NCBI RefSeq assembly: GCF_000142905.1
Contig: NW_013657675.1
Span: 434,001-498,000, forward strand
Length of the DNA stretch: 64,000 bases
Origin: Thecamonas trahens ATCC 50062
Taxonomy: Eukaryota > Protista > Apusomonadida
Direction of reading: 5' to 3'
Shown: positions 3,201 to 63,793 of the stretch, in pieces
How the letters are laid out: every line of letters begins with the position of its first letter
Position numbering within the stretch: position 1 is the stretch's first letter
Position numbers and translations under genes: made by a program
The notes under the pieces: generated by a model
The model's input: only the letters and a program-made list of their open reading frames with translations
Databases searched by the model: none
What the model was told of the DNA's origin: nothing

Positions 3201-3734
3201 CGGCACCTATCCGCTCCTTTTTGCCGTCGTCGCCGTCCTTGACTCGCCGGCCATCCGCTCGCTCAAGCGCACCCAGTCTGTGGTGCCCGCCCCGGTCGAG
3301 AACGCCCTCGCTCAGCTCATTGCGGTGTGCAAGGACCACTCTGAGCACGCCGCCTACCTCTCGCTCCTCCGCTACTCGGCCGGGCCCGTCATCGTCCACC
3401 ACATCTGCCACCTCCGCATCCTTGCCCGCAAGTTGGCCTCGATCGTCGCCGACGCCCGCGCAACGAGCTGGAGGCCGCCGCCACCGCCGAAAACGCCATC
3501 ATGGCCGCCGAGCTCCTCTATCCGCACCGGACCGAACCCGACACCGCCATCGCTGCCACTATCCAATTGTATCATCCCAAGTACGGCCTCGAGCCGCAGC
3601 ACTGGGCCCTAGCTTCCAAGCACATCCTCTCGGCTGCCTCTTCATCCAAGGTTGGCAAGGTGGAGCACAGCCTCTGGCGCGCAGCATCAACCCGCCAGCC
3701 GGAGGATGTTCTTGCAGACATTTTCTCGGCCTGA
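217..3734 (+). CDS. EF-hand-containing RasGEF (CDC25-type) with a second degenerate GEF-like C-terminal domain; apparent frameshift at ~3455-3495
   Basis: First ATG after a (CA)/(CAT) tract is at 217. EF-hand loops DTDGNGTLSVSEF and DLDASATISRDEF. CDC25 motifs PLEFARQLTLINFE, NFFGMNAL...AIDRL and PPAIP. A second, similar block AVVAVLDSPAIRSLKRT. The -1 frame (ORF 3501-3734, NELEAAATAENAIMAAELL...) has the typical codon bias and probably supplies the true C-terminus. Confidence 0.85.
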
Positions 3735-3991
3735 TCCCACCACCAAACTATTCATCCAAGCCATCCTAGCCCAGCCAGCATAGCCCATCCCAGCACGTCT
3801 CGACCATGTTCTACACTCTTGCGAACGCCGCTGCCAGCCAATGGAACGCCTGCGAACAAAAGGAAGGAACTCCACAAGGCCTTAAAAAAGGGCTTCCTCG
3901 CAGGCACCCACAGGCACCCACCCCCACACAGGCACAGCAGGCACCACCAACCACAACACAAACACACCACTTGGACCACCTACACCCCATC

Positions 3992-6286: not shown

Positions 6287-6305
6287 CACTTGCTACACTC
6301 GGGTC

Positions 6306-9300
6306 TTAGTTAGCCATCGGCGAGAGCGGCGACCGGCGCACGCCGCGCGACGGCGACGTCACGCGCGTTGGCGAGAGCGAGAGCCGCTCCAGCAGCTGCG
6401 GCGACATCCGCTGCAGCAAGGACTCGGGCGAGAGGAGATCGGCCGCCCGCGAAGTGGGCGTCATCGGCGTCTTTGGCGTGGCAGGGTACAGGGGGGTTGC
6501 TGGTGTCGGTGGCCGCGAGTTCTCGTCGCCCTTGCGCGGCGTGCCGCGCGGCGTGCCACGGGCCTTGCGCCGTCGCCGCCGCTGCTTGGACTCAGCCCGC
6601 TGCGCCGCCGCGCGCTTCTTGAGCGCCGCCGCCCGGGTATTGTCACGCGCAGCCTTGTCCCCGAGCTCGACAAACTCGGTGAGATCCGCCAAAAAGTTGG
6701 CCCCGGCAGACGCCGACGTGCCCAAGCTGTCACCAGAGCCGGTCCGCGCGCCCTCGCCAAAGTACAGCAACATGTGGGACTCGGCATCGCGGGCAGTGGC
6801 CAGCGTGGACTCAAGTGCCGTCATTCGCTCGGCAGACACGTGGTGGAACGGCTCTAGGCGCGCCACAAACCCGTCGGCGTCCGCCAGTCCACCGCCAGCT
6901 GCCAGCGCTCGCAACGCCTCGAGCTCGGCGCCAAGGGTGTGCGCTGACTCGCGGAGACACGCCAGCTTACCCGCAATCTGCCCGAGGTTGAGCTCGGACG
7001 CCGCGCCAACGTCGAATAGCTGAGTCCGGAGCTGGCCTAGAAGCTCAGGTGCCGACTCCTGGATCGACTCGATGACTACGTGGAGGAGCGTGGTCGACCC
7101 GTCGGTTGTCTTGGTGTCGGCGAGCTTGAGCAGCGCGTCGAGCTTGAAGCCTCCCGCCTGCAGCTTCCCGCCAGCATTGAGGTAGTTGCCAACGTCGAGG
7201 ACGCAGCGCAGAACCTTGGCGAGCGCATCAGATGCCACAACCTGTGAGCATGCCGAGAGCGCGAGCCCGACCTGGTGCTCCATCTCGCCCATGACCTCAT
7301 CAAACGAGAGCTGCATCTCAAAGGCTCGCAGACGGGCATGGAGCCGCGGAATCGACTGCAAGCCAGCAATGAGCGCAACCGCTGGTGAGACAGCATCGCA
7401 CATCGCAAGGGCGGTGACTGCCGCAGGCTCGAGTGCATCGAGCACGGAGGCCACCTGAGTCCAGGTCTCGGCATCCGGCAGGTGCTTGGCCAGCCGGGCA
7501 ACCCGGTCAGCACCAAGCACGCTGTCATCGAGCTCAACAAGCGCGCGCACAATGTCGGCTGGCGCAAGACCCGACGAGGCGTAGACAGAGAGCATGATCT
7601 CCATCCGCTGCACGCATCGCGGGCCCATGAGTGCCATCAAGTCGCGGACAGCGACGTCGATCTCGGTCTCGACAGGCTCGGCCTCGGCTGGCTCGTCCTC
7701 GTTGGTTGGCTCAGCCTTGGTACACGTCTTGGCCACCGAGTCCTTGAGCTCAAACAGGGCATCGAGTTTGGAGGTGTCAACCTTGGGCGGGCTCACTTCG
7801 CTCAGCTTGGCAAAGACCGTCGGCCCGAGCGCGTTTGGCTTGATTTTGGTCCAGAAGAACCGCTTGAGCTTGCGATTCGGGCGGATAGGCGAGGGCATGT
7901 GTGCCGGCGAGTCGAACATGCCCAGGCTGCCAGGCATCGGTGGCGGCGGCGGCGGCGCCCCGATTGGAGTCCCCGGCAGAGGCGGCGGCGGCGGTGCTGC
8001 CATGCCAGGCATCGGCGGTGGCGGCGGGGGGGCGGCAGCCGGCGGCACAACTGGAATTCCTGTACCGGCCGACTCACCAGCCTCCCGCGACGGGGTGCTG
8101 AGCTGAGGCGCAGCGTCGCCAATCTCGGCCTCGTCCTCGGCTTCGTCGCTCGTCCCGAGGTGCTTGGCGAGTAGGACGTCCAGTGACGCCAGGTTGGGGT
8201 TGGGGCTCAGACCATCAACAACCGCGATGCAGTCGGAAATGGCAGCGTCAATGCTGTCTGCACTCTCAACACTGGCGTCAGCCGAGAGCATGAGGTAGAG
8301 GAAGCGCTGGAGGAGCTCCAAAAGGAGCTTCTTGGAGCGGATCGAGGGAAGAAGCGAGACGGTCTGAGAAACGACGTCCTTGGGATCAGAAAGCTGCAGC
8401 GACGAGAGCGCACATTTGGCGTCGTCATCGTTCATGCCCTTGATGAAGACGTCAAGCTGGGCACGAAGCATGTTGTGAGTCTCCATGTCGATGCCGGGCA
8501 GTGGCGAGAGGACAATGACATGGAGGTTGTCGACAGCGTTCCGGAGACCGAGCTCGACAAGCTCGGCGCGACGGCGGGCGCGAAGCGCAATTGAGTCCGG
8601 CCTCGAAATAATACAGTTGATGAGCCACATGGCGGCGTAGAGGAGGGTGAGCTGATCGGTCGATTGCGTCGAGCGCTCGTTGGGGTCGAGCGTCAGCTCC
8701 TTGACCAGGTCGATAAACCGCCGGCTCTCGGCCTTGCGGGTCTTGCGCGCAAGCTCGGTATACGCCCCGATGACGACAGCGTAGCCTGTCGGCGAGTGCA
8801 AGGTCAGTGCCGAGAGCAGCTTGTAGATGTCGGTACGGATGAGGACGTGATCGTCGTGGACGCACTCCAGGATGCGGACAACAAAATCGGGCGTCTCGAG
8901 CGCGTGGTGCATGGCGCACGGTGCGTTGAGCAGCTTGAGAAGTGCCTGGATAGCCGCCGCGCGGTAGGCTGGTCCTTGCTGCGAGCGGGCGACGGCTGCG
9001 AGTGCCGAGCTGCGCTTGGTCCTCGTCAGACCATCCTGCCGCCGGTGATGCACGTGGTCGGCATGAAGGGCGTCCAGGATGGCATCCATCCCGCCGATCT
9101 GCACAAACGTCTCCGTCCATGCCGGTGGGCTCGAGTCGAGAACTTGGACAAGCTCCTCGAGAATGCCTGGTGACGAGGTCGACTGGATGCGGGCGACGTA
9201 ATCCTCAGGCGAGTGAGCGGCGGACCGAGCGCGGCGGCCAGGCGATGCAATGCCACGCCCGCGCCCGCGCCCACCACCTCCGCTCGACGGCTCTGTCAGA

Positions 9301-49578: not shown

Positions 49579-49990
49579 CCCCCCCTCCCCCACTAACCCG
49601 CTTGCCTTTCACCAATTTTATTGTTGCCTGTCACGTTTGTCGGTAACGGGTCAGCCAGCAGTTCCGGCCAACACTCCCCCCCCCCCCCTCGCCCGCCCCG
49701 CCGCAAAACTAGGCCCACCTGTTCTGACGAGGGCGGAGCGTCCCTCCCTCGTCCTTCCCTTCACTTCTCCCCCTCACACTTTGACCAAGGTCGAAGGCAG
49801 ACCAGACGCGGAGGGCCGTCGGTGCTTTCTCTTCCCCCCCCCCCCTCCCTCTCCCGCTCTGCGCTTTCCCACCCACCCCTCTCCTTGTTGTGGCTGTTCG
49901 CTTATCGCAAGTGACCGCAGTTCTTCGCCGCCCGGCCCCTCACCGCACCTTGCAGACAAGGAGGTGGCAAAGTACTTGTGAGTGGTTGTC

Positions 49991-52900
49991 ATGGCGGCTG
50001 ATACAAATGCAAATGCGGCGCCAGACGTCATCTCTAGGTTCTCCGGATGGGTGGGCGACTGGCGTGTGGCTGTTCTCGAAGTCTCGCTCCCTGCTTGGGT
50101 CAATGTCATGATCGACGACTCGTGGGTTCACATCTCGTCGCTGATCGAGGCCTCAGAGCCGATGCTTCTGGCTCACTTGACCAACGCGATTGTGAGCGAG
50201 GATGTATTCAACGGAAGCGGCATCGCCGACTCGATCGTGTATCCCATGACCGGCGCCAGCGACGGCCGGCGCAATGTGCAGACCTGCCTCGACGCACTCA
50301 AGCGGGCCGGTGCGGCCATCTCGGTCAAGGCTGACGAGATTGTAGGCAGCTCAGTAGACTCAGTCAAGACGCTGCGGCTGTTAGTGGAGATGTACGAGTT
50401 TTACTACTCGCGGCGGCTTGGGCTCTCTGCGCGCAACTTTCACAAGGGCCTCATGCGGGCTGTCCGCAGGCAGCTCAGCTCGGTGTCGGGCATTCCGTCG
50501 GGAACGCGCAAGGCGCTGACGGACGCACTGGACCGGCTGGTCAACTTTTCAACCAACTGGCAGTCGGGCCTCCTGTTTTCGGCCCTTGTTGCCTCGCTCG
50601 CGCCCAACTCGCTCTCGCCGTCGTCGGTCTCTCTGTCAAAGATTCCAAACGATGCGCTGCAAGCGGCGTTCAACGCTGCCAACACCGGCCTTGCGGTCCC
50701 GCAGCTTATTTTGCCATCGCAAGTTGCGTCGCAGCCCGAAGAAGTCTCGATTGCTCTCTATGTGGCCATGATCCTCGACTCGGGCATCAACGGCTCGGAC
50801 CGCTCGCTCAAAGCGCAGCTGATGGCCATGGAGACCGAGCTCAAGCGGGTGCAGCAAGTAGCCGACCAGGTGAGTGGCCTGCAGCTGGCGCTGACGGAGA
50901 CCCGCGACGAACTGGCCAAGGCCAAGGGCGTCAATTCGGCTAACGAGGGCCTTAATCTGGAGCTGTACGCAAAGTCGGACGAGATGGCCTCGCTTCAAGC
51001 TGAGATCATGAAGCTCAAGGCCAACAACATGGCCGTGACCAAGGCGCTCGATGAGACCAAGGCCAAGCTCGCGCGTGCCCGCGAGAACACCGGCGACCCC
51101 TCACTTGGCCCGGTTGTGGAGCGCATCAAGGAAGACGTCTCCAATTTGATGTCCAAGGACGTCTCGTCGCGCATGCTTCGTCTCCAGGCGGAACTGACCA
51201 AGATGACCGAGCGGCTGGCCCGCATCGAGCTCCAGCATCGCATGCACGAAAAGGGCGTGACGTTTTCGCGGCATACCGAAGACGACGTGCCTGCCCCGCA
51301 GGGCAATGTGGTCATGATGTGCACCCACGTGCAGGGCGCCAACAGGCTATGGATCAAGCATCCGTCGGTGATGGCACGGGCGCTCAACACCCACCACGCC
51401 TTCCTCCGCACCGTCCTTCCAACCTACGGCGGGTACGAAGTCCGCGTTGACGGTGACTCGTTCCTGGTCGCCTTTTCGTCGCCGGTCCAGGCTCTCCGGT
51501 GTGGCATCTTCCTTCAGATGGAGCTCATGAAGCGTGACTGGCCGCGCGAGATTCTGGAGGAAGAGGACGAAGACGTCCGGGTAGTGTTCGGCTCATCAGG
51601 CTCGACCCTCTTTCGTGGCCTCCGTGTGGCCATGGGCTTTGACATTGGCCGAGCACAAACGCTGGAGGACCCGGTCTCCAACCGCGTCGACTACCAAGGC
51701 GACGTTGTCGAGCGGGTGCTCGCGCTCTCGATGGCGGCGCTTGGCGGGCAGATTGTCATCTCGGACATGCTGCACGAGGCCGTGGTCGACTCGCTCAGCT
51801 CGCTCTCGCTCGGTACCGATCCGCCGGGCGTCACCCCGCTTGACGCGGTGGTGGTGCCGGGCAAGGACATGCTAGTCAACTCGCTGCAACTCTCTCCGAG
51901 CCAGCTGAAAGATCGTTCCTTTGTCGAAGCCAAGCGCGAGGTGGCCGACGATGTCATTGAGCTGTACAAGACCCGCAACCTCGACGCCATCCAGAACGCG
52001 CTCTCGGAGCTCTCGTCGTCGGCTTCTCTGCTGCACTCGGAAGTTGACACGCTCTCAGCCGACTTTGCCGAGCGCATCCAGGGCTGTGTCTCGCTCCAGC
52101 ACCGGATGAAGGAGCTGGCGCACACGATGGCTGACCCCGTCGAGGTCCGGCTCGCCCTCGACAAGGCCGTCCAGTTCTTGCACTCGGTCCCGTCAGCGCT
52201 CAATCCCGAGGTCTCGCAGCTCGCAGTCTCCAAGCGCAAGATCAACGCGCACCTCGAAAAGGTGACCATTCTGGAAGAGGTCATCACCTCGCTCGTCGAG
52301 GGTCAGCGCAACCGGTGGAAGGGGACGCAGCACGCTCGCTTTGCCACCTCTTTTCTTGACTCGAAGCGCGAGGCGCTGGCCTTTGCCGAGGAGCGGCGTG
52401 AGCTCATGCACACCATTGACATGCTCAGGTCCAAGCTCGAGAAAGCGCAGCGGTCGCTGAGGGTGACTCGGCGCGGCTCAACACCCAACGGCGCGCCGCC
52501 GCTCTCGTCGTCGCCGTCGCTCAGCTCGGCACTGGGGCCAATGGCGTCGACGCTTGGCGGTGGACCTCCGTCTCGCGACCGCCGCTCGCCGCAGCCACAC
52601 CTCGGCGGCCCGCCGTCGATGCGCTCGTCGTATCAGGGCGGCGATGAGTTGGAGGCCGACACGTCGTCGTCGGCGGTGCTCTCTGTCTCGGCATCGGGCT
52701 CGACGCTGCCGTCGCTGGGCGCGTCGGGCGCACCGTCGCGCCGCGGCCAAGGCGGCGAGCGTGAGTACCACCGCGGATGGGACGCATCAGCGTCGACCGG
52801 GACCTGGGCGCGCCACGCTGCGCCGACCCGTTCAGCCTCACAACGAACAGTGAGCGGCCCGTCGCCGACCGGCCCGCGCGGTGCGCGCGAGCGGTCGCGC

Positions 52901-54145
52901 GAGCGCGGCACTCGCCGCGGCCGCGACCGGTCCAAAGACCGACTCACCCATTCGCAAGTCCGCTCGTCCAAGGGTCGCGGCAAGGACCGCGAGAAGGCCA
53001 AGTCCAAGTCCAAGGCCAAGTCCAAGGCCAAGGGTAAGGATCGCGACAAGCGCGAGCGTGGGTCCAAGGACGGCCGGTCGTCTGGCCGCCCGCGGCGCGA
53101 GCGCTCGCGTGAGGACCACGAGCGGTCGCGGTCGGGCTCGTCGCGCAAGTTTGCTCCGCGGTCGTCGCCGCTCGCTGGTCCCGTCTCGCCATCGTCCTAT
53201 GGCGGCCTCCGCGCAGGCGCGGGCTCGTCTGGTCACGGCACGTCCCGGCGGGCGGCGTCGGGCCGGCGGTCGCCTGGCCATTCGTCGGACCTGCCGCCGT
53301 TGGCAGGTGGCGGCAAGGACATTGACAATGCGGCTATGCTCACCGTCGAAGAAATCATTGAGCTGGACTCTGGCGATGATGAATCGAACCGGGCCAACAT
53401 GCTCTCAGGCCCAGCGTCGTCGCGGTCGCGGTCCAAGTCTCCGCTCTCGACGCCAACCTCGCCCAATCCGCCGACGCTGCGGTCACGGTCGGGCGTAGAG
53501 CTCGCAGCACCGGAACGTGGCTCATCATCGCATGAAAACTCGGGCTCGCTTCCAGGCACGCCGTCGTCTATCACACCTACGTCGCCGCAACCGCCGCAAA
53601 CGCCGGCCGAGCCTATGGCCCCCACCAGCTCGACCGGCTCCATCGGCGCGGCCCAGAAGAAGAAGCGGATTGTGCCCGAGGTCTCGCGCATTCTGCTCGT
53701 CGATGCCAACCAAGTCTCGCAAATCATGGGCCAAGTCGTGCTCGAGCAGCACGGGTACGAGTGCGTGGCGCTAGGCGACGGCATCGCTGCCGTCGACAAC
53801 ATCGAGAGCCAGCTCCGCGCCGGCAAGCCGTACCAGCTCATTCTCACTGCAGTCGACGTGCCCGGTCGCGACGCCTTTGACCTCACCTCGGAAATCCGCC
53901 GCATCGAGTCGGCGCTTGGCTGGTATCGCACCCCGGTTGTCGTCATGTCGACCGATCCGGCTTCGGACATGGAGGCGTGCATGGATGCCGGCGTCGACGG
54001 CATCTTCCCCTTCCCCATCTCGATGACGACCACCCTCGTCTCGACTATTTTCCAGTATCCCGCCGACGGGCAACCGGAGAAGGAAGCGCTCACCGCGCCG
54101 GGCTCTGTGGCTATTGCGTACATGATTCGCCATCACAGCGACTAA
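49991..54145 (+). CDS. Calponin-homology + coiled coil + degenerate class III nucleotide cyclase + SR-rich linker + pseudo-receiver domain protein; 5' end may extend upstream via intron 49978-50037
   Basis: CH-like NVQTCLDALK...ADEIVG and VNFSTNWQSGLLFSALV...AFNAA..GLAVPQLI. Cyclase PAPQGNV...GYEVRVDGDSFLVAF...FRGLRVAMG...DY.G...GGQIVIS. Receiver RILLVDAN...YQLIL...PG.D...RTPVVVMS...CMDAGVDG. Confidence 0.85.
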   Translation: MAADTNANAAPDVISRFSGWVGDWRVAVLEVSLPAWVNVMIDDSWVHISSLIEASEPMLLAHLTNAIVSEDVFNGSGIADSIVYPMTGASDGRRNVQTCLDALKRAGAAISVKADEIVGSSVDSVKTLRLLVEMYEFYYSRRLGLSARNFHKGLMRAVRRQLSSVSGIPSGTRKALTDALDRLVNFSTNWQSGLLFSALVASLAPNSLSPSSVSLSKIPNDALQAAFNAANTGLAVPQLILPSQVASQPEEVSIALYVAMILDSGINGSDRSLKAQLMAMETELKRVQQVADQVSGLQLALTETRDELAKAKGVNSANEGLNLELYAKSDEMASLQAEIMKLKANNMAVTKALDETKAKLARARENTGDPSLGPVVERIKEDVSNLMSKDVSSRMLRLQAELTKMTERLARIELQHRMHEKGVTFSRHTEDDVPAPQGNVVMMCTHVQGANRLWIKHPSVMARALNTHHAFLRTVLPTYGGYEVRVDGDSFLVAFSSPVQALRCGIFLQMELMKRDWPREILEEEDEDVRVVFGSSGSTLFRGLRVAMGFDIGRAQTLEDPVSNRVDYQGDVVERVLALSMAALGGQIVISDMLHEAVVDSLSSLSLGTDPPGVTPLDAVVVPGKDMLVNSLQLSPSQLKDRSFVEAKREVADDVIELYKTRNLDAIQNALSELSSSASLLHSEVDTLSADFAERIQGCVSLQHRMKELAHTMADPVEVRLALDKAVQFLHSVPSALNPEVSQLAVSKRKINAHLEKVTILEEVITSLVEGQRNRWKGTQHARFATSFLDSKREALAFAEERRELMHTIDMLRSKLEKAQRSLRVTRRGSTPNGAPPLSSSPSLSSALGPMASTLGGGPPSRDRRSPQPHLGGPPSMRSSYQGGDELEADTSSSAVLSVSASGSTLPSLGASGAPSRRGQGGEREYHRGWDASASTGTWARHAAPTRSASQRTVSGPSPTGPRGARERSRERGTRRGRDRSKDRLTHSQVRSSKGRGKDREKAKSKSKAKSKAKGKDRDKRERGSKDGRSSGRPRRERSREDHERSRSGSSRKFAPRSSPLAGPVSPSSYGGLRAGAGSSGHGTSRRAASGRRSPGHSSDLPPLAGGGKDIDNAAMLTVEEIIELDSGDDESNRANMLSGPASSRSRSKSPLSTPTSPNPPTLRSRSGVELAAPERGSSSHENSGSLPGTPSSITPTSPQPPQTPAEPMAPTSSTGSIGAAQKKKRIVPEVSRILLVDANQVSQIMGQVVLEQHGYECVALGDGIAAVDNIESQLRAGKPYQLILTAVDVPGRDAFDLTSEIRRIESALGWYRTPVVVMSTDPASDMEACMDAGVDGIFPFPISMTTTLVSTIFQYPADGQPEKEALTAPGSVAIAYMIRHHSD

Positions 54146-54514
54146 GCCGGCCATAAACCGGTCTCGAGCCATCAGCCGCATGGAAGAGAGCAGGTTTTTG
54201 TGGCAGGAATCAGAAAACAATACATCTCGCTGCCGTTGCAATGCAAGAAGGCTCAGTTGATGATGAATGAGGCGAGGGTGGCTGGTCGTCGGTCAATGTT
54301 GGCCAAGTGCAAGGATATGCCAGCCTGTCGCGTTCGTACTTTTTGTTGCACAGAACTCAAATGGCGGTGACTTGCGCCCACGTGCGAGCATTTGGCGAAG
54401 GTGGCAACGACTGTCTCTCTGCCTGCGGCAAGGCCACCAACCAAGGCGGCGACAGAGAGACAGAGAGGGATACTTACACACGCTCGACATAGGGCACGAC
54501 AGAGGGCAGAGGAT

Positions 54515-57500
54515 ATGAGCTTTGCAAGTGGGGCTACCCTTGGAGCGCGTGGCGCAAGCCCGTCGATGTCCATGTCGCCAGCACCGCATTCACCTTCACC
54601 AGGACCTGGAAGTAGGACCGGCGGAGTGGTGGTCACCGCCGAGCTGCGGGGAACATCCCACCCGGACTGCCTCATGCACCGCAAGTGGCAGCTGGGAGTG
54701 GATGCACCAAGTAAGCTGCAGCCACTGTCACTAGCCGTCAAATGTGAGGGTATTGAGTTTGAGCTGGAGACAGAGCCCATGGCTCTCGGCTCTCGTATCG
54801 TCTACAAGGACGGTGCTATTGACGCCACCGCCATTCGCCACCGCCTCCGCCAACCGCGTGGTCTCATCAAGGTCCACTTTGTCTTTCGCGGCGCCCTCCT
54901 CCCGCCAGACTCGGCTCAAGACGATGCCAGTTCACAGCCGGTAGAGGTCGTTGCAACGTCGCGCGAGTACTTTCTCTTCACCAACACTCGCCAGGTCTCT
55001 GCCTTTCGTGCACGCCATGGCTCAGACTCGGTCCTCGCCCGCGACATGCCGACGCCCTCGCCGTTTGGCGTCCCCTTCCGCTACCTCAAAGACGTCTCGC
55101 CCGACTCGGATGCACCTGCTGCTGGGCCCGGGTCGAGCGGAGGCGGCCGTGAAAGAGCCAAGGAGCCGCGCCGCCGCAAGCGCTCGTGGCACTCGCGGTC
55201 ATCGTCGGCGTCAGACACGCCGCCGTACACCACCTTTGCGTTCATGGTTGGCGTGGGAGGTGCAAGCGCCGCCTTTGAGCTATGGACATCGGCATCCGGG
55301 GTGCCTACTTCTCTTGGCGAGCTTAAGCGCGCGCTTGCCATGCGCTTTACCGACTCTCGTGGCTTGGCGCTGACCTCCGTCTCAGTCTGGGAGCCCGTCT
55401 TTGATGCATGGGAGCCGCTGACCTCGCTTCAGCAGCTTGTCTCGCTCGCCGAGCCGACCAAGCTCCGCGGCAAGCTCCTGCTCACCACCGATGCGTCGTC
55501 AGCACCGTCGGCACCGTCTGGCCGCGGAACCGGCCCAGCCTCGTCGGCTTCGCCGCAAGACCCGCTTCCGCCGCCTATGCTCTCGTCTGGCGGCAGCTCG
55601 TCGGTTTTCGACGTCCGCTCGGCTGACGATGGCCTGCCGTTCCTCTCGCTCGACGAGCTCGACTCGATCCTGCACATGTCGGCGACAACGCCGGCTGGCG
55701 CCCACCCGAATCCGCACTCGTCGACAGCTCCGGCGCCGCAGGCTGTCGCCGACTTTGACGCGCTCACGTGCGCCACAGACATGGATCTCACGTTTCCAGA
55801 GCTCGAGCTGCAGCCGGAGCAGCCGAGCCAACCGGCGCTGTTTAGCTCCAACTCGGCGCTGGCCACCTCGCTCTCGCCACAGGAGCTGGCAAGCCTCACG
55901 TCGCGGCTTGTCGACGAGCTCGAGGTCTCGGTTGGGGCCTCGGCACCAGCGCACCAGCCGGTCTACGACCTTGTCGAGGTTCTGCCATGGCAGGCTGTGT
56001 ACTCGGCGTCCACCTCTGAGCTTGTCGACTGGACCGGCGGCCAGAAGGCGTTCTCGCTCACTGTCATGAGCTCGGCGCAGTCTGGCACCGTGCTGCCGTC
56101 GGCAGCGACGCTCAACATCGGCGCCATCCAGCTGGACGTCTCTCGCGAGCTGATGGCGACCGGCGCGTCGTTCCGAGTGGTTACCATCTTGTCGCACGAG
56201 GTGGTGCTCTCGCAAGTTGCTCCGCTCGTCGAGCCGGCGATGGCGCGGGCTGAGCTGGATCCAACGACCCCGGTTGTCCTCGCCCAGCTACCAGTTTCGC
56301 TCACGCTCGACGGCGTTACCTCGAACGCGCGTGCCTTTGTCGTCTATCTCTCAGTCTTGGCTGGAAGCGGCGACTCGCCGGCGCCGGGTAAGAAGCGCAA
56401 GCTCCGCCACGACGACGACGGCGCCGGTATCGGCCGGCCTGGCCAGCGCGCCAAGACGCTCGGCGCTGGCAGAGCGTCGTCGAGTGGCGGCGCGTCGAGC
56501 TCGACAGCGGCGGCACCAGGGCTTGGGTGGGGCATGACCATATGGGCCACCGGGCCGCGACCGAGTTCCGACCTGGTGGTCGACGGCCTATCCGACTCGC
56601 CGGTTCTCAGCGCACACGCGGCGGCGCTGCTTCCGCTCCTGCTTCAGCCGCCGTTGGCGATGGCGCAGGAGCTAGGTTCGTTTGCGCCAGGCTCGCTGCC
56701 GGCCCACGTGGCTGGCGAGCTGGTGATGCACGCGGTGCGGTGTGCTCGTGTCGGCGCGCTCCGTGTTCTTCTTTTTGGCGTGCATGGCCACCCTTCGGCG
56801 CTTGCGTCCCTGGTCCCTGGCGGGCTCCGCGCGCTCGACTGGATCGAGCCGCACACTGGCCACACGGTGGTGCACCTTGCGGTGCTCCTTGGCTCGCCGT
56901 TTGTTCTTGGCTCGCTCCTCATCAAGTACGCACCGATCATGCTCCGCGAGCTCAACACGCCGAACAGTGCTGGGCTCACGCCGCTCGGCCTCGCGCTCTC
57001 GCTTGGCCGTCGGTGGCTTGTTCCGCTCCTGCTTCACTTTGGTGCGGTGCCGCAGCTTGGCGACTGCGCTGTGCCGGGCCCGCTCGCGCTCCGGGCGTAC
57101 GTCGCACTTGCGCTTCGCGCTGCAACCCTCGGCCGCGCATTCCGCCACGGCGCCATCACTCTTTTCCTCAGAGACTGGGCTGCGTCGCATGGCCAAAGCT
57201 CGAGGGCCACACTGCAGGATGTTCGCCTCGAGCGACGGGCGCTGACGCCTGTTCTGGCCAACTCGGACTCGCAGGGCTCATGGAACACGCCAGGGTCACC
57301 GTCTGTGTCATTATCATCATTATCATCATCATCTTCTTCTTCGTCATCGTGGACCGCGACTGCGTCGTCAGAGCTCGCGGTCTCGGGCGATGCTGAGGCT
57401 CGAGCCCGCAGCAGTGCGCCGCGGGCCAGCCGCTCGCTGCGGTCAGGGCAGACTTCAACCACCACCGGGCGGACTGTGTCAGGCGGAGATGAGGAGGAGG

Positions 57501-59584
57501 AAGCGACCGAGTTGGCGGCCGAGCCGGCGCTCAAGCTTGCCTCGCACGAGATTGAGCTCGCGCAGTTTGGCGGCGAGCCGTATTTTGACCCACTGGATCC
57601 GCGTCAACGGCACGAGATTGTGGCATCTGGCACCGGCGGCGGAGTTGTGGCGGGCGCCGGCGTGCTGCGGCTGGGAGTGGTGGCCGGCGGTGTGAGCCGA
57701 AACGGATCGCCGCGGCAGACAGAGCCGCAGCGCCACAGTCCGCTTGCAAAGCGGCCGTCTGAGCGGAGCGAAGCAAATGCTGCGCCGGTGTGGTCGGTGT
57801 GGGTGCTGAGTGCGCTCGCACTCGCGGTCTTTGTCATGGTGGCGTCGCTGGCGGTGCTGATAGGGGTGGTGACGGTGTATGCGGCAGACACGCGGTCGTG
57901 CGGCTCACTAGCAGAGCTTGCCGGGCAGTACTCAAGCCTTGCGCGGCGCGGCGGCCATGCTCTGGGCACTATCCGTGACCGCGACTATTTCAACTGTACC
58001 ATCCTCAACCTGGCCGGACTGCCGTTGACAAGCGCGAGCGGCGGCGCAGGCAACGCTTCCGACATTGGCATCTCGCTCTGTCGCGGCATCGCAGCGTCGA
58101 TATTTTATCAAGGTCTCGACATTGATCGCACGCTCGACCGGCGGATTCGGTACACTTCGTTTGTCAACTCTGCAGATGTTGTTGTGGGATGGGATGTGTC
58201 GCTGCCACGTGCGAGTGGCGGGCGGGTGGTCTCTGGCCCGCTTGTGCACGAGACACTGGCGATGATGACGCTGGCCAACGGGACGCGTGGGGCGTGGCTC
58301 GGTCCGGACATGGGCTGGATTGTGCCGACCGAGGCGCCAGGCGCATCGCCACCACGGCGCGAAGAGCTGGCACAGCTTGTGCAAGCCCGGCTTCGTGGAG
58401 AGGTCGGGTTGGCCAAGGCCAACATGCTGTTCAACACCAGCGTGTGCCTGACATCCGAGACACGGGAGCGCGGCGGGGAGCGGCTGGAGCTCGCGCTCGC
58501 GGGCGCGCTTGTTGTCGAGGTCGCGTCACTCGCGGACGGCTTTGTGGCGCTCAACGGCGGGCAGATAAGCGGAACCGGCCACGTGTTTGAGGCGCTGCCG
58601 CCGGAGGAGCCGCGGTGTGCTGCCGTGATCGGCCCGCTCTCTGACCTCGTGGCGGAGGCGGGGGCGACTGCGGCCAGGGCTGCACAGTCACCCAAGTCGA
58701 TACTCGATGCGACGACGCACGACTCTGTGGTGCGGTCGTGGGCGGTGGATCCGCAGCCGCTGGCGCTTCTCGGATCTATGGTGGTGGCTCTGCCGCAGCG
58801 GCACACCTCGGACGCAGTGCTTGCGACGGTGGTGAGCGCCGGCGTGTCGGTTGTTCCGCTTGCCGACCAGCTGGGACTCTCGCGCGTCAACGCGTGGGAC
58901 GATCTCGACCCGCTCTCGTCGGAGGACTACATGCTCGAGCACGGCGACAAGTTGTACGACGTGGCGCCTTTTGTGCACCGTGTCTTTCTCCGAACGGTGC
59001 TCCGATGGGGTGGCTCGCTCACCGACATGGTGCAGTCTGTGTTTGGCAGCGCCGGTGCAGAACTCTTCCTCGCGCCGCACTCGCTTAACGCAGTTTGGTC
59101 TGCGGGCGGAGCCTTGACGGCTGCGACGCCGCTCTCGCCCAATCTCTCGCCGGCCTCGGTGTTTGCCAGCCAGGTGGTTGACGAGAACGAGTATGACGAG
59201 GGGCTTGTGGTGGACTCGATGGCACCCAAGCCGCGCATTACACGCGGCTTCTTTGGGGTCGTTGTCTCGATGATGGTGGTGTTCTTTGTTGGTGCGCTCG
59301 GCTACACTATCTGGCTGGTGGCGATGCGATGGAACGCCGGACATCCTGCGGCTGCGCGCCGGGCCCGCGACCTTCGCTACGCCGCGGCCGCGCACCGACA
59401 CAAGGGCAAGGACGAGGAGGATATAGTGTGGGACGAGGCCGCGGGCATGCCTGCTGGCTGGGCCGAAGCTGCCGGCGTTGATCCGGCGTGGCGGGTCGAG
59501 TACATGCGCAAGGTCATGATGCTCCAGGCCGATGTCGACGACGATCACCTGTGGGAGCGGGCTGAGGTGGAGTACGGGGCGTAG
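54515..59584 (+). CDS. Two-TM protein: putative DNA-binding N-domain, IPT/TIG, NLS, Gly-rich linker, ankyrin repeats, TM, AapJ/BztA-like amino-acid-binding domain, TM
   Basis: Uninterrupted ORF. IPT-like EVLP...GGQK...VSLTLDGVTSNARAFVVY, then KKRKLR. Ankyrins GHTVVHLAVLLG and GLTPLGLALSLG. TM segments at ~57790-57885 and ~59246-59325. Solute-binding-protein motifs lie between the TMs. Confidence 0.8.
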   Translation: MSFASGATLGARGASPSMSMSPAPHSPSPGPGSRTGGVVVTAELRGTSHPDCLMHRKWQLGVDAPSKLQPLSLAVKCEGIEFELETEPMALGSRIVYKDGAIDATAIRHRLRQPRGLIKVHFVFRGALLPPDSAQDDASSQPVEVVATSREYFLFTNTRQVSAFRARHGSDSVLARDMPTPSPFGVPFRYLKDVSPDSDAPAAGPGSSGGGRERAKEPRRRKRSWHSRSSSASDTPPYTTFAFMVGVGGASAAFELWTSASGVPTSLGELKRALAMRFTDSRGLALTSVSVWEPVFDAWEPLTSLQQLVSLAEPTKLRGKLLLTTDASSAPSAPSGRGTGPASSASPQDPLPPPMLSSGGSSSVFDVRSADDGLPFLSLDELDSILHMSATTPAGAHPNPHSSTAPAPQAVADFDALTCATDMDLTFPELELQPEQPSQPALFSSNSALATSLSPQELASLTSRLVDELEVSVGASAPAHQPVYDLVEVLPWQAVYSASTSELVDWTGGQKAFSLTVMSSAQSGTVLPSAATLNIGAIQLDVSRELMATGASFRVVTILSHEVVLSQVAPLVEPAMARAELDPTTPVVLAQLPVSLTLDGVTSNARAFVVYLSVLAGSGDSPAPGKKRKLRHDDDGAGIGRPGQRAKTLGAGRASSSGGASSSTAAAPGLGWGMTIWATGPRPSSDLVVDGLSDSPVLSAHAAALLPLLLQPPLAMAQELGSFAPGSLPAHVAGELVMHAVRCARVGALRVLLFGVHGHPSALASLVPGGLRALDWIEPHTGHTVVHLAVLLGSPFVLGSLLIKYAPIMLRELNTPNSAGLTPLGLALSLGRRWLVPLLLHFGAVPQLGDCAVPGPLALRAYVALALRAATLGRAFRHGAITLFLRDWAASHGQSSRATLQDVRLERRALTPVLANSDSQGSWNTPGSPSVSLSSLSSSSSSSSSWTATASSELAVSGDAEARARSSAPRASRSLRSGQTSTTTGRTVSGGDEEEEATELAAEPALKLASHEIELAQFGGEPYFDPLDPRQRHEIVASGTGGGVVAGAGVLRLGVVAGGVSRNGSPRQTEPQRHSPLAKRPSERSEANAAPVWSVWVLSALALAVFVMVASLAVLIGVVTVYAADTRSCGSLAELAGQYSSLARRGGHALGTIRDRDYFNCTILNLAGLPLTSASGGAGNASDIGISLCRGIAASIFYQGLDIDRTLDRRIRYTSFVNSADVVVGWDVSLPRASGGRVVSGPLVHETLAMMTLANGTRGAWLGPDMGWIVPTEAPGASPPRREELAQLVQARLRGEVGLAKANMLFNTSVCLTSETRERGGERLELALAGALVVEVASLADGFVALNGGQISGTGHVFEALPPEEPRCAAVIGPLSDLVAEAGATAARAAQSPKSILDATTHDSVVRSWAVDPQPLALLGSMVVALPQRHTSDAVLATVVSAGVSVVPLADQLGLSRVNAWDDLDPLSSEDYMLEHGDKLYDVAPFVHRVFLRTVLRWGGSLTDMVQSVFGSAGAELFLAPHSLNAVWSAGGALTAATPLSPNLSPASVFASQVVDENEYDEGLVVDSMAPKPRITRGFFGVVVSMMVVFFVGALGYTIWLVAMRWNAGHPAAARRARDLRYAAAAHRHKGKDEEDIVWDEAAGMPAGWAEAAGVDPAWRVEYMRKVMMLQADVDDDHLWERAEVEYGA

Positions 59585-59649: not shown

Positions 59650-61830
59650 TCACTGTTCGGCGGCCTCCAGCTCGGCCAATCTTGCCAACACAGGCGCGAG
59701 GGTGTCGGCGAGCGCTGCGGTGGCAGCGGAGACATCTGCGAGCGCGACGGCGGGCGCGGAGGTGATACGCGAGGAGGCGGCGGCGTCAAAGGCGGCAAGA
59801 TCAAGCGAGAGCTGGCGGTAGATCTTAAAGGTGTCAGACGGCCCGGCCGAGCCTGCGGGGCGGGCGCCACGGAGGCGGCGCAGCGAGTCAGCGGCGTTCT
59901 TGACCGAGGTGAGGACGGCAAGGAGGCTGGCAGCAAAGGCGGTAGCGGCTGCTGCGACAGTCATGAGCCGCCACTCGGCGAGGCGGGCGTCTGCAGCGAG
60001 GCCGACGACTGAGGCCTCAAACTCATCGAGCGGGTCAAAGAGAGTGGCAAGAAAGACCGATGCCGTAGTCGGAGTTGGCTTGGAGAGGCCGCGGTAGGCG
60101 CGCGGGATGGCGGAGAGCTCAGCGTCGAGGTTCTGTGTGAGGGAAGACGTGAGGAGGTCAACGATGGCGGCCGAGGCCTTGGGCCGGAGGGCAGCGAGGG
60201 CAGCGGCAGGTGCGGTAAGGCCGGCCGAGACGGCGGCAGCAGCGGCGTCGGCGGCGGCGGGCGAAGTCTCGGGCCCGAGGGCGCCTACAGCGGCGGCTTC
60301 GAGGCGCGGCAGAGCGTTGCAAAGAACAGCGTTGGCGTCGGCGTCGAGGGCAGCAAGCTCAAAGAGCGAGACGGGCGTCTCATCGGCCTCACCGAGTGTG
60401 CGGCGGTCAAAGAGGAGGTCGACCCACGAGGTGTAGCGGGCGAGCATCTGGAGCGAGAGCTTGAAGAACGAGCCCACGAGCGGGCGGAGAACAATGGTCG
60501 GCGCCCACACGTCAGCGAGGACAGTGACGAGGGAGCGGGTCTGGGTGACGGCGGCGGGAAGCGCGTCCGCGGGCGCGTCGTCGAGCTCGGCGAGGGCGAG
60601 CGGTGCGTCAAAGGCAGCGGCAAAGGGGCCGACGAGGCCCTGGAAACGGAGCTGAAAGTAGACCGGTAGGTTCCAACGGCGCATAAATGCGAGGTAGTGG
60701 TCCGAAGCTCGGAAGGCTTGGATGGCGTCGACCGGGCCGAGGACGGACTCGACGGCGACGAGAAAGGCAGAAGTGGCCGAGTAGTTGGTGTGGAAGAGGT
60801 CCGGGAGGCCAGGCGCAAAGATATGTGGGATGCGGTCGTCGACGAGGCGAAGGAGGACGGCAAAGACGGCGTTGCCCATAAACTCAAAGGCCGCACGCGG
60901 GGCGTCGGCGCCGTCTGGCAGCTGGTCGGCCGACGAGGCCGCGGCCGGGACCGAGACTGTAGCAGCGAGCTCGAGGAGGAGCCGAAGCTGCGGGCGGCGG
61001 AGGAGGACGACGACGGCGTCATAGATGGCGGGCAGACCGTTGTGCGAGCCAAGCGAGCCGGCCTCGAGGGCGGCCTTGGTGATGACAGCCTCGAGAGCAG
61101 GGGTGACAACGTGGCGGGCGACGACAGCCTCTGCGTCGGCAACACCATTAACTGCGGCGTAGGTGCGGAGCGAGAGCTTGAGGCCCGGCCCGTCTGCGGC
61201 GTTGAGCGCGGCGAGAAAGGTCTCGCGGAGCGAGGCGCGCAGTGCGTCCTGGACGGCCGAGATGCGCGGGGTGAGGCCACGGATGAAAGCCAGACCCTCG
61301 CCTTGCTCTACATAGTGCAGCAGCCTGTTGAGCTCTGCGCCAACGCGCTCGATAACGTGCGAGTCCGAGGCGGCGGCGACAGCGGGACGGTTGAGGCCGG
61401 CGCCTGACGCGCGAAGACCGAGCAAGGCCTCGAGCTTGTCGACACAGCGGGCAGCATCGATACAGAGAGCTAGCTGAGCGCGAGCAGCGGCAACGGCAGC
61501 GCGCTCTGCGGCCTTTGCAGCGACAGTGGCGCGAGCAGCATCGAGGGCAGCGTGGAGCGAGGCGACCTGAGCGCGAGCCGTGGCCAACGGAGCGGCGATG
61601 CGATCGAGAGCATCATCCAAGCCAGAGAGGTCTGTGGAGAGAGCAAGAAAAGCAGCATAGTCTTCGTTGATAATGTGAAACAGCTCGCCAGAGACGTCTT
61701 CCCGGACAGCATCGAGCTCCTTCTTGAGGCTTCCCAGGGGAATGACCTTGCGTGCGGCGGCGACGTAGGTCTCTGGCACAAACTCGCCCTTTGTCTCAAA
61801 GGTCTCTGCTGAGACCACAAAGTCTGTCAT
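59650..61830 (-). CDS. COG2: Conserved oligomeric Golgi complex subunit 2
   Basis: IINEDYAAFLALSTDLSGLD, FAPGLPDLFHTNY, FMRRWNLPVYFQLRF and SDTFKIYRQLSLD match the COG2 pattern. Confidence 0.9.
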   Translation of the reverse strand: MTDFVVSAETFETKGEFVPETYVAAARKVIPLGSLKKELDAVREDVSGELFHIINEDYAAFLALSTDLSGLDDALDRIAAPLATARAQVASLHAALDAARATVAAKAAERAAVAAARAQLALCIDAARCVDKLEALLGLRASGAGLNRPAVAAASDSHVIERVGAELNRLLHYVEQGEGLAFIRGLTPRISAVQDALRASLRETFLAALNAADGPGLKLSLRTYAAVNGVADAEAVVARHVVTPALEAVITKAALEAGSLGSHNGLPAIYDAVVVLLRRPQLRLLLELAATVSVPAAASSADQLPDGADAPRAAFEFMGNAVFAVLLRLVDDRIPHIFAPGLPDLFHTNYSATSAFLVAVESVLGPVDAIQAFRASDHYLAFMRRWNLPVYFQLRFQGLVGPFAAAFDAPLALAELDDAPADALPAAVTQTRSLVTVLADVWAPTIVLRPLVGSFFKLSLQMLARYTSWVDLLFDRRTLGEADETPVSLFELAALDADANAVLCNALPRLEAAAVGALGPETSPAAADAAAAAVSAGLTAPAAALAALRPKASAAIVDLLTSSLTQNLDAELSAIPRAYRGLSKPTPTTASVFLATLFDPLDEFEASVVGLAADARLAEWRLMTVAAAATAFAASLLAVLTSVKNAADSLRRLRGARPAGSAGPSDTFKIYRQLSLDLAAFDAAASSRITSAPAVALADVSAATAALADTLAPVLARLAELEAAEQ

Positions 61831-61843
61831 GAGAGTGACAGTA

Positions 61844-61847
<4 letters not shown>

Positions 61848-61889
<42 letters not shown>
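61848..61889. repeat. (TG)n microsatellite, about 21 units
   Basis: Perfect TG run immediately upstream of the COG2 start. Confidence 0.95.
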
Positions 61890-61890
<1 letters not shown>

Positions 61891-62065
61891 AGGAGTGTTT
61901 GGTGTGTGTGTCTGAGGGTATGACGGGGGGGGAAGGGGGCATCTAAGGGGTAACCATTGATAACGCCCGTTGACCATGGGGTACCATTGATACCCCCCCC
62001 CCCCCCTCCCATGACCAACCACCACACTCCACAGACCCACACCTACACCCTCCTCCTCCCCTCAC

Positions 62066-63793
62066 ATGCCGTCGCCCACGTCGTCGTCGTCCACGACGAC
62101 CACGCCGTCGTCGTCGGTACCCCCTTCAGCACCTACCGGGACCACCGAGTCAAGCCCGGTGGGGACAGCAACAAGCGCAGGTGGGCCATCAGCAAGCACA
62201 GGCGGTGGGGCAGCCGTAGGCGGTGACGAGGCGGTGGCCATGGCGGTGGCACAGACAGCGCATGCGTATGCACACCCACAGCAGACAGCCATGCCTGCTC
62301 CTCGCCCTCTCTCGGCCTCGCTTGGTCATCCCTCGCCCTCGCGCAAGCGGCAGCGCGACATGACGCCGGACGACTTTGGCCTCCGTCTCCCTCCCGGCGC
62401 CGTCCCGCGACCAAAGCGCCGCAAGACGCCGACCAAGACCCCATCGCCGGCCTTTTCAAAGCCCATCACTCCCGCCATTGCTCCGGCATCAGCGCCGGGC
62501 GTTAACGTTGTCGTCTGCCTCCATCCGGATGCTCCTGCCGCCACGGCCATGGCCGGTGGCGCTGTCGTCGGCATCGATGCCGTGGGCGGCACCGTCCTGC
62601 CGGGCGCCACCACCCCGTCGGTCGAGTCCGAGTCCGAGCATGAGGGCCTTGACCCGCTCGAGCACTGGCTCACCCACGTCCAGGTGCTCACGGGCGCCAA
62701 GGCGAACAAGATCCTTGAGGTCCAGGCCTACGATACGGTGGTCTCGGCCTTCCGCACACTCATCACTGCCCGCCTGCTCTCGGCACCGATCTACGACGCC
62801 CACACCTCGACATACGTCGGGACCATCGACATCGTCGACCTTGTCCACATGGCCGTCAACTCGCTCTCCAAGGTCACCTCGCGGGTCTCACTTGAGAACC
62901 TCATGCGGACCAAGGTGTTCGGCATGAAGGTTTTCCAGCTCGCTAACTTTTCGTCGCTCAACCCGTTTGTCGCCGTCAAGCTCGGCTCGTCCATCCTCAA
63001 GGTCATGCAGGGCCTGGCGGTCGACAAGCTCCACCGCGTGAGCATCACCGATGACAAGGGCCGCGTCCGCGGCATTATCTCGCAGTCGTGGATGGTTCGC
63101 TGGCTCTCGACCAACGCGCAGCGGTTTCTCGGCGAGCGCGCCCACGCCCCGATCGCAGACCTCGGTCTCGGTGAGCCCAAGACCGTTGTCACCATTCGCG
63201 ACTCGCAGCTCGCCATCGAGGCCTTCTCCGCCATGGTCGAAGCCTCAGTCTCGGCCGTCGGCATTGTCGACTCGCACAACGTGCTCAAGGGCGTCATTTC
63301 CGTTCGCGACATCAAGGCCGTCCGCCCCTCACAGTCCAATCCGGACGTCATCCACTTTGACGCCCTCTACATCAACGTCATGGAGTTTGTCGCCGTCTCA
63401 CGCGCACAAGTTGTCTCCACCGAGAAGGTTCCGCTCCTCTCCTGCTCACCAGACACTCCGCTCACCGTCGTCCTCGGCCGTGTCGTCGCCGCGCGCATGT
63501 ACCGCATCTTTGTCGTTGACGAAATGCATCGCCCGGTCTCGGTCGTCTCGCTCGCAGACCTCATCCGCGTCTTCCTCCCGCCCTCAGCCTCATCGTCACT
63601 CATTGCCGAGGCTACTGCCTCGGCCAATGCCACCACCACCGTCTGCACCACCACCACCTCGTCCAATGCCACCACCACTGTCTCGTCTATTACTGTCGCG
63701 ACCACTTCGGCCACACCCGTCGTCTCGCCAGCATCGGTTGCTGGAAATCCGTTCGGGCTGCACTCGAGCTCCGAGCCGCCCGTCACCCTCTGA
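62066..63793 (+). CDS. CBS-domain protein (4 CBS; AMPK-gamma/Sds23-like) with low-complexity termini
   Basis: LLSAPIYD...YVGTIDIVDLV, LHRVSITD...GIISQS, VSAVGIVD...GVISVRDIK and YRIFVVDE..PVSVVSLADLI. Confidence 0.88.
   Translation: MPSPTSSSSTTTTPSSSVPPSAPTGTTESSPVGTATSAGGPSASTGGGAAVGGDEAVAMAVAQTAHAYAHPQQTAMPAPRPLSASLGHPSPSRKRQRDMTPDDFGLRLPPGAVPRPKRRKTPTKTPSPAFSKPITPAIAPASAPGVNVVVCLHPDAPAATAMAGGAVVGIDAVGGTVLPGATTPSVESESEHEGLDPLEHWLTHVQVLTGAKANKILEVQAYDTVVSAFRTLITARLLSAPIYDAHTSTYVGTIDIVDLVHMAVNSLSKVTSRVSLENLMRTKVFGMKVFQLANFSSLNPFVAVKLGSSILKVMQGLAVDKLHRVSITDDKGRVRGIISQSWMVRWLSTNAQRFLGERAHAPIADLGLGEPKTVVTIRDSQLAIEAFSAMVEASVSAVGIVDSHNVLKGVISVRDIKAVRPSQSNPDVIHFDALYINVMEFVAVSRAQVVSTEKVPLLSCSPDTPLTVVLGRVVAARMYRIFVVDEMHRPVSVVSLADLIRVFLPPSASSSLIAEATASANATTTVCTTTTSSNATTTVSSITVATTSATPVVSPASVAGNPFGLHSSSEPPVTL

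Follow-up and report, generated by a model that had tools for sequence, protein, structure and literature searches.

What kind of protein is specified by a eukaryotic gene that reads, in one frame, through ankyrin repeats, two membrane-spanning segments, and a domain reminiscent of bacterial solute-binding proteins? The question is raised by a 64,000-nucleotide stretch of the Thecamonas trahens genome (hereafter, the window; C5:434001-498000 in an assembly of 28.7 Mb and 131 contigs), in which the forward-strand positions 54515..59584 hold a complete and apparently single-exon coding sequence for 1689 amino acids (aa) plus the stop codon. The initial annotation of this gene had proposed an amino-acid receptor that doubles as a membrane-tethered transcription factor, with kinship to NF-kB p105/p100 or to yeast Spt23/Mga2. 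Our sequence comparisons establish that residues 1142-1540 (57938..59134), located between the two predicted transmembrane (TM) helices, are homologous to the AapJ/YhdW/BztA-type binding proteins of bacteria. The best supported description of the gene and its relatives is a lineage-specific family of two-pass membrane proteins that are receptor-like and of new architecture. All features of the window gene described below lie on the forward strand.

The loop between the TM helices contains a divergent AapJ/YhdW-type solute-binding domain of the SBP_bac_3 class. In a single pairwise BLASTP comparison, it matched intact Escherichia coli YhdW, the AapJ orthologue, with 35.4 bits and an E value of 2e-6. 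The YhdW query was an intact natural allele from another E. coli strain; the K-12 yhdW gene is a known frame-broken pseudogene and was not used. The high-scoring segment pair (HSP) placed loop residues 23-90 against the start of the mature binding protein, and a second, colinear HSP was located at the far end (NAVWSAGG in the loop and NNLWNNGG in YhdW). E. coli GltI and the SBP_bac_3 proteins encoded by the organism's own genome showed no similarity to the loop. Hidden Markov models (HMMs) of AapJ, derived from 108 close or 30 diverse homologues, found a sole match in the 1689 residues, at aa 1144-1214, with E values of 1.6e-6 and 1e-5. The real loop scored 16.9 bits against AapJ, whereas all of 3000 shuffled versions scored 5.5 bits or less and none came within 10 bits of it. 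When tested alone, the loop past its first ~90 residues gave pairwise z values of -0.25 (local) and -0.36 (semi-global) and a profile alignment value of -0.6; the best local match in this remainder paired LNAVWSAGG with the family C-terminal motif RGLNALWxKGG at an E value of 0.03-0.06. The Pfam SBP_bac_3 model did not match the whole protein or the cut-out loop at E values of up to 10, NCBIfam gave no match to the protein, and the genome-wide search with PF00497 returned seven other genes above the cut-off without the window gene among them. SBP_bac_3 was also recovered as a protein-language-model neighbor at 0.77, a value below the level reached by shuffled proteins that provides a lead only.

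The window gene is one of four members of a family in this genome, all sharing the same colinear architecture from end to end. The C2 paralogue (L143:~3294-7340, forward strand), an intact open frame of 1424 aa, was found when the AapJ alignment was used to query the organism's own genome, and a profile of two whole proteins, those of the window gene and C2, then recovered the C69 paralogue (L152:3263-7562, reverse strand) and the C5b paralogue (C5:503167-508973, corresponding to L153:3167-8973, forward strand). Direct own-genome searches using three pieces of the window protein missed all of these genes. C5b is located ~10 kb downstream of the window gene, just beyond the window. The C69 paralogue is distributed over three frames and switches frame twice within the beta-rich domain, and C5b is distributed over two frames with one change directly after the GVLRLGVVA motif; these breaks may reflect pseudogenes or assembly errors. 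The check for paralogues suggested along with the initial annotation thus yielded three genes of the same architecture. The annotation had also stated that no protein of this architecture was described, and this statement held in all searches beyond this genome: full-length and region searches of a 5.8-billion-protein collection returned only the window protein itself, as did an exhaustive phmmer search of 1.84 billion representative proteins with the C-terminal 582 residues (aa 1108-1689); scans of JGI metagenome contigs, one for the window protein and one for the C2 paralogue, returned nothing; and a literature search revealed no description of such an architecture.

The paralogues substantially strengthened the assignment of the loop. 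Using hhalign, the window-gene loop alone matched AapJ with an E value of 7e-4, and the C2 loop matched the AapJ profile over 231 columns with a probability of 93.7% and an E value of 1.9e-7. A two-sequence profile of the window-gene and C2 loops reached 97.1% and 7e-11, and a profile of all four loops aligned with a 26-sequence AapJ alignment at 98.4% and 4.8e-15 over 294 columns, spanning family positions 25-335 of 341. These paralogue-based profiles extend the AapJ match over the whole domain, and we regard the homology as established. The order of AapJ/BztA motifs that had been listed for the loop in the initial annotation was borne out, clearly so at the N-terminal end by the shuffling analysis and over the whole domain once the paralogues were used. 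When the two-sequence loop profile was compared to all Protein Data Bank (PDB) sequences, 4z9n_A ranked first (E value of 0.002); 4Z9N is by far the closest solved relative of an AapJ-type query (E value of 4e-136, versus 3e-24 for the next match). From the homology to 4Z9N, we infer that the loop domain has a two-lobed type II periplasmic-binding fold. Four cysteine residues of the loop (Cys1161, Cys1189, Cys1311, and Cys1368) align with Cys40, Cys66, Cys151, and Cys193 of the AapJ family, and they are invariant in the four paralogues as well as in the bacterial family. The local contexts of these cysteines, taken in order and colinear with their family counterparts, had P values of 0.054, 6e-4, 1.6e-3, and 0.32. 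Like AapJ, BztA, and YhdW, the loop retains the N-terminal signature L..v..RG.l.C followed by C-R-a-x-A-A-A, along with the AEE-G-I-T, GNY..F.RN.G, and RG-LN-x-LW-x-GG motifs in the same order. It differs from these proteins in having only ~20% identity, insertions of ~60-85 aa, a level of divergence that falls below Pfam and NCBIfam detection, and a placement within a eukaryotic protein of 1689 aa, where two TM helices flank it. As a matter of method, a domain missed by Pfam, NCBIfam, and a HMMER search against 1.84 billion proteins was recovered through hypothesis-driven comparison and a paralogue intermediate.

The loop of ~450 aa is enclosed by TM1 (aa ~1090-1123; 57782..57883), a putative signal-anchor with a Kyte-Doolittle peak of 2.93 and an equivalent in the paralogues, and TM2 (aa ~1575-1602; 59237..59320), which has a peak of 2.28 and is present in all paralogues. 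A C-terminal tail of 87 aa (59321..59581) follows; it is Arg-rich beside the membrane and unconserved, with the tails of the paralogues ranging from ~12 to 50 aa and showing no similarity. The window protein has no N-terminal signal peptide. N-x-S/T sequons account for 5 of the 12 Asn residues in the loop versus 1 of the 11 found in the N-terminal 1089 aa (P value of 0.013 by shuffling), and the loops of the four paralogues contain 19 sequons in a total of 1865 residues compared to 14 in 3714 cytosolic residues, a 2.7-fold difference in density (P value of 0.004). The conserved cysteines belong to a type that is disulfide-forming in the periplasmic relatives. Because of the two TM helices, the missing signal peptide, the conserved cysteines, and the sequon enrichment, a topology with a cytosolic N-terminus, a loop facing outward or into a lumen, and a cytosolic tail is plausible. 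The succession of TM1, sequon-bearing loop, TM2, and short tail read in the initial annotation agrees with the hydropathy peaks and the sequon excess, and the hairpin topology it proposed, with the loop outside the cytosol, is likewise plausible.

Does the loop domain bind an amino acid? In this class of binding proteins, an arginine holds the alpha-carboxylate of the ligand and an aspartate holds its alpha-amino group (Arg75 and Asp157 in GlnBP). The positions equated with these residues by motif alignment, Arg112 and Asp199, are invariant in the AapJ alignment. The arginine is kept in the window gene (within SLPR) and is replaced by Gly, Ser, or Tyr in the three paralogues; the aspartate position, six residues past the fourth cysteine, is Pro in the window gene and Thr, His, or Pro in the paralogues. 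Amino-acid binding by the loop, and with it the amino-acid receptor of the initial annotation, is doubtful on these sequences, the aspartate being replaced in four of four members and the arginine kept in the window gene only. Because the canonical aspartate is lost throughout the family, the ligand is probably something other than a standard alpha-amino acid, and the loop domain may bind something else, or nothing. Binding proteins often switch ligand by replacing exactly these arginine and aspartate residues.

Other genes of this organism also connect solute-binding domains to membranes. At least five (C6:53675, C56:49289, C6:598459, C56:47600, and C41:21525) encode SBP_bac_3 halves split by a pore-like region; in these five genes the pore-like region contains a YTANLA(T/S)IL motif and is followed by a final TM helix, a layout like that of ionotropic glutamate receptors (iGluRs). 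The product of a gene on C1 (L014) is a binding protein anchored to the membrane by its C-terminal TM segment.

The cytosolic part of the window protein is less easily recognized, as Pfam, NCBIfam, and PDB searches of the protein identified nothing beyond weak ankyrin repeats. The ankyrin-repeat region (aa 695-894; 56597..57196), with its clearest repeats at aa 759-845, corresponds to a helical segment of the four-way family alignments and was supported by three approaches. Pfam applied to the cut-out region matched Ank_2 at aa 759-845 with an E value of 2e-4 (22.2 bits versus a gathering threshold of 27.3) and Ank_3 with 2.7e-3; a PDB sequence search yielded DARPins at 6e-5; and all 10 of 10 PDB matches to the family ankyrin profile were ankyrin proteins, the best being espin at 3.5e-4. 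The ankyrin repeats of the initial annotation are therefore retained. The same applies to the basic, NLS-like cluster KKRKLR (aa 626-631; 56390..56407), whose G-x-K-R-x-R pattern is in place in all four paralogues, to the Gly/Ser/Ala-rich low-complexity stretch after it (aa 632-690; 56408..56584), and to the acidic/hydrophobic linker (aa ~365-470; 55607..55924), whose character and D-M-D core are common to the paralogues. Further segments are defined by conservation within the family. The N-domain (aa 36-169; 54620..55021) shares the signature RGTSHPxC...RW...SKGxID...FxN(T/S) in four of four paralogues, and a small conserved domain (aa 235-323; 55217..55483) is supported by the four-way alignment and by a BLASTP segment that it shares, in colinear order, with C2 (E value of 0.23). 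Profiles of these two domains gave no credible match in the PDB. Beyond the ankyrin region, a Ser-rich low-complexity linker (57212..57649) includes a poly-Ser run that is also present in C2, and a juxtamembrane motif, GVLRLGVVAGG (aa 1049-1059; 57659..57691), is located ~30 aa before TM1. Across the family, GVLRLGVVAxG stands 30-45 residues before TM1, is near-identical in all four paralogues, and is among the best-conserved short motifs of proteins that share ~25% identity overall.

The claims that linked this cytosolic part to transcription factors did not fare as well. The beta-rich "IPT-like" domain (aa 477-619; 55943..56371) is a real segment, conserved in the paralogues by family alignments and by a BLASTP match to C2 (aa 413-647, E value of 1e-4); its assignment as IPT/TIG is unsupported. 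Pfam TIG (PF01833) had no matches in the window ORF versus 68 elsewhere in the genome, and an HMM made from the genome's own TIG domains gave a best match at aa 549-605 that was non-significant (E value of 0.32). The family profile of the domain compared with the genome's own TIG domains by hhalign had an E value of 0.03 and a probability of 2%, and neither the domain alone nor its profile found a relevant match in the PDB. Language-model neighbors of aa 470-625 were Rel/CSL IPT domains (RHD_dimer/TIG) at 0.78, a value that shuffled proteins often reach. The N-domain, read initially as a beta-rich, Ig-like fold, is similarly a conserved segment for which Pfam, the PDB, and profiles do not support that fold. 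No Rel homology domain (RHD) was detected in the window ORF by Pfam at E values of up to 10, the N-terminal domains lacked PDB matches, and a genome search with PF00554 and PF16179 was blank, a result that is uninformative since the positive control was also silent. A single-sequence AlphaFold model of aa 1-640 had a mean pLDDT of 35.0 and was unusable. The proposed kinship to p105/p100 or Spt23/Mga2 thus has no RHD or TIG match behind it, and the DNA-binding domain expected of a transcription factor was not found by Pfam, PDB, or family-profile searches; as judged from these comparisons, the resemblance to p105 or Spt23 is one of layout and not of demonstrated descent. Of the 68 TIG matches in the genome, a large proportion come from a cluster of giant open frames (1745-4031 aa) at C22:432124-446397 on the reverse strand, which contain dozens of tandem TIG/IPT domains and look like giant surface proteins.

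We conclude that the window gene is real and expressed, and that it belongs to a marine eukaryote whose genome is GC-rich and poor in introns. Its uninterrupted ORF extends over 54392..59584 with the first ATG at 54515, and the GC fractions at the three codon positions (0.69/0.55/0.74) are coding-like in all 300-nucleotide slices and akin to those of neighboring genes; the placement of all parts in one ORF, as initially annotated, is confirmed by the ORF call and this uniform codon bias. Marine metatranscriptomes (subsurface, seawater, and hydrothermal vent) hold sequences near-identical to the gene. Four runs from two studies (subsurface and seawater) provide short contigs that cover the two halves of the ORF, mostly at 99% identity or more, and contain no indels or credible splice joint, such that transcription as one mRNA is likely. 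Relative to the environmental RNA contigs, 9 of 15 variants are synonymous in the frame of the window gene, compared to an expected 27% (P value of 0.007). All three variants inside the loop are synonymous, and five of the six non-synonymous variants of the gene fall in low-complexity linkers, the Ser-rich one included; the sixth is S761P, in the ankyrin region. In one low-depth metatranscriptome contig (run X2; depth of 2.3), position 56319 is followed by four extra letters (GGTA) and then by position 56975. This contig is more probably chimeric than spliced; if the junction were genuine, the basic cluster would be lost along with part of the ankyrin region.

How are these features best explained? 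We consider it likely that the gene encodes a two-pass membrane protein in which an outward AapJ-type binding domain serves as a ligand-sensor head and the ankyrin-containing cytosolic module as the output. The first ~1090 residues, having no signal peptide, would stay in the cytosol, TM1 would carry the chain across the membrane, the ~400-aa AapJ/YhdW-derived domain would reside outside the cytosol, probably disulfide-bonded and glycosylated, TM2 would return the chain to the short cytosolic tail, and the state of the binding domain would be passed to the cytosolic module. A sensor role is the most likely one because the fold motifs and cysteines are maintained, the loop variants are synonymous, and the organism's iGluR-like genes use binding-protein domains. 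Several points weigh against this explanation. Two of the four family members are frame-broken, and the family may be decaying; the canonical ligand-binding residues are unconserved, and the loop domain could be a structural relic; the cytosolic part has no signaling or DNA-binding domain recognizable by Pfam, PDB, or family profiles; no single RNA contig spans the full window gene, and DNA carry-over is possible in RNA libraries; and a single-sequence AlphaFold model of the loop, with a mean pLDDT of 33.1, was unusable. Taken to their end, some of these points describe a relic ectodomain, in which the fold is kept as an extracellular scaffold (for adhesion or as a glycoprotein spacer) that senses no ligand while the ankyrins anchor cortical or cytoskeletal partners. 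The loss of the canonical aspartate in all four members and of the arginine in three, the extreme divergence from bacterial relatives to the point that Pfam SBP_bac_3 gives no match, the two frame-broken paralogues, and the generic nature of ankyrin repeats as protein-binding modules are all consistent with such a scaffold. We nevertheless find it doubtful, as many fold motifs are retained over the whole domain, including both lobes and the four cysteines, all three loop variants are synonymous, and replacement of these very residues is a common route of ligand change in binding proteins. A membrane-tethered binding protein that feeds an ABC importer, as found in Gram-positive bacteria and archaea, would fit the function of the closest relatives, since AapJ, YhdW, and BztA serve ABC importers in bacteria; however, the partner permease that accompanies those proteins was not found here. 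A search for the BPD_transp_1 ABC permease detected none in the 28.7-Mb genome and was positive in 14 of 14 control genomes, and the 1090-aa cytosolic extension would have no role in such a system. Because the genome is without a detectable BPD_transp_1 permease, the loop domain would not be part of a bacterial-style importer, which argues for a sensor rather than a transporter and makes the importer highly improbable.

The alternative closest to the initial annotation is a membrane-tethered transcription factor, in which ligand binding would trigger partial cleavage by the proteasome or within the membrane, and the N-terminal fragment would travel to the nucleus by means of KKRKLR to act on DNA. 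A large cytosolic N-terminus is indeed anchored by a TM helix, acidic/hydrophobic stretches and the basic cluster occupy the same positions in all paralogues, the highly conserved juxtamembrane motif could mark a processing site, low-complexity Gly/Ser stretches adjoin folded domains as in p105, and the language-model neighbors of aa 470-625 are Rel/CSL IPT domains, although at just the 0.78 often matched by shuffles. Against this, a DNA-binding domain was not detected by Pfam, PDB, or family profiles, the genome search provided no RHD (a weak point, given its silent control), the IPT domain is unsupported by Pfam TIG, the PDB, and hhalign, basic clusters and acidic stretches are commonplace in low-complexity proteins, and there is no evidence of cleavage; on balance we consider such a factor rather unlikely. 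The tether, the acidic stretches, and the conservation of the basic cluster and of the juxtamembrane motif make ligand-regulated release of the N-terminal module near that motif attractive; it would be the most specific mechanism within the sensor reading, but we consider it rather unlikely. More speculative is one-component signaling of a previously undescribed kind, in which the loop would directly gate the release of the protein's own 1000-residue module, with its activation-like acidic stretches, NLS-like cluster, and ankyrin repeats, at or near GVLRLGVVAxG and the module would enter the nucleus; if this were true, one polypeptide would link extracellular chemistry to transcription, and the N-domain would represent a new DNA-binding or co-regulator fold. 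Finally, the whole arrangement could be an artefact, either an open frame that arose by chance at high GC content or a misassembly that joined two separate genes. The window has a GC content of ~63% with long ORFs dense on both strands, long spurious ORFs are frequent in GC-rich genomes, the gene is overlapped in other frames by several ORFs of 250-320 aa, and no RNA contig covers its whole length; an open frame of 1730 codons is nonetheless far beyond chance at this composition, the codon bias is uniform, the variants show a preference for positions that are synonymous in this frame, and C2, an independent paralogue on a different contig, encodes the parts in the same order from end to end within one frame, so that an artefact is scarcely credible.

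The genes around the window gene include several that are clearly eukaryotic, encoding COG2, COG7, glucosidase II beta, ZNF598, and an ABCD transporter. Directly upstream, 49982-54145 (forward strand) encodes a 1387-aa protein that is an unusual fusion of calponin-homology, adenylate/guanylate cyclase, and response-regulator receiver domains (Pfam E values of 1.9e-6, 1.4e-9, and 2.8e-7, respectively). The COG2 gene (59650-62040, reverse strand) is convergent with the window gene and ends 65 bp from its stop codon; with a CBS-domain gene (62066-63793, forward strand), it forms a divergent pair that shares a very short common promoter region.

Comparison with known systems places the sensor-like protein that we favor among several families without a full match to any. 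Yeast Spt23 and Mga2 are transcription activators anchored to the endoplasmic reticulum, each with an IPT domain, ankyrin repeats, and one C-terminal TM helix. The window protein is similar to them in that a large cytosolic N-terminal part with ankyrin repeats, preceded by a beta-rich domain, is tethered to the membrane by a downstream TM helix. It differs in having two TM helices and a 450-aa luminal or extracellular domain rather than a single C-terminal tail anchor, in its undemonstrated IPT domain, and in the lack of sequence similarity to Spt23/Mga2 in any search. With NF-kB p105/p100 it shares a layout in which a beta-rich domain is followed immediately by a basic cluster and then by a Gly-rich stretch and ankyrin repeats, and Bcl-3 (of IkB type) is among the PDB matches of the ankyrin profile, alongside unrelated ankyrin proteins; in contrast to p105/p100, the window ORF has no Pfam Rel homology domain and no death domain, and its product is predicted to be membrane-anchored. 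SREBP resembles the window protein in its hairpin, which is a prediction for the latter and places both termini, including an N-terminal effector, on the cytosolic side, but SREBP has a bHLH-Zip domain, a luminal loop of ~30 aa, and a large C-terminal regulatory domain, whereas the window protein has no bHLH, a 450-aa loop that is predicted to be folded, and a short tail.

Further parallels are receptors in which a binding-protein fold faces outward. Bacterial periplasmic binding proteins have been recruited several times as eukaryotic sensor heads, in glutamate receptor channels, class C G protein-coupled receptors (GPCRs), and receptor cyclases. Like iGluRs, class C GPCRs, and natriuretic-peptide receptor cyclases, the window protein would use the periplasmic-binding-protein fold as an outward, membrane-tied sensor, and like bacterial sensor kinases with a periplasmic SBP_bac_3 domain (e.g., PDB 3H7M), it has the binding domain looped between two TM helices. 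Unlike both groups, its large cytosolic module precedes TM1 instead of following TM2; it has no kinase, cyclase, channel, or seven-TM part; and its binding domain is of the AapJ subfamily. Binding-protein heads on eukaryotic receptors are thus a known theme, whereas the AapJ subfamily, the hairpin geometry, and the enzyme-free module are undescribed as far as our searches reach. If ligand binding does release the module, signals from chemicals outside the cell would have a new and very direct path to the nucleus, and the family would offer a handle on nutrient sensing in poorly studied marine protists. Compared to the known receptors, the family would represent a further, independent recruitment that is unusual in three respects: a binding protein of a different subfamily (AapJ type), a hairpin-loop geometry with the effector before TM1, and a cytosolic module that contains no known signaling enzyme.

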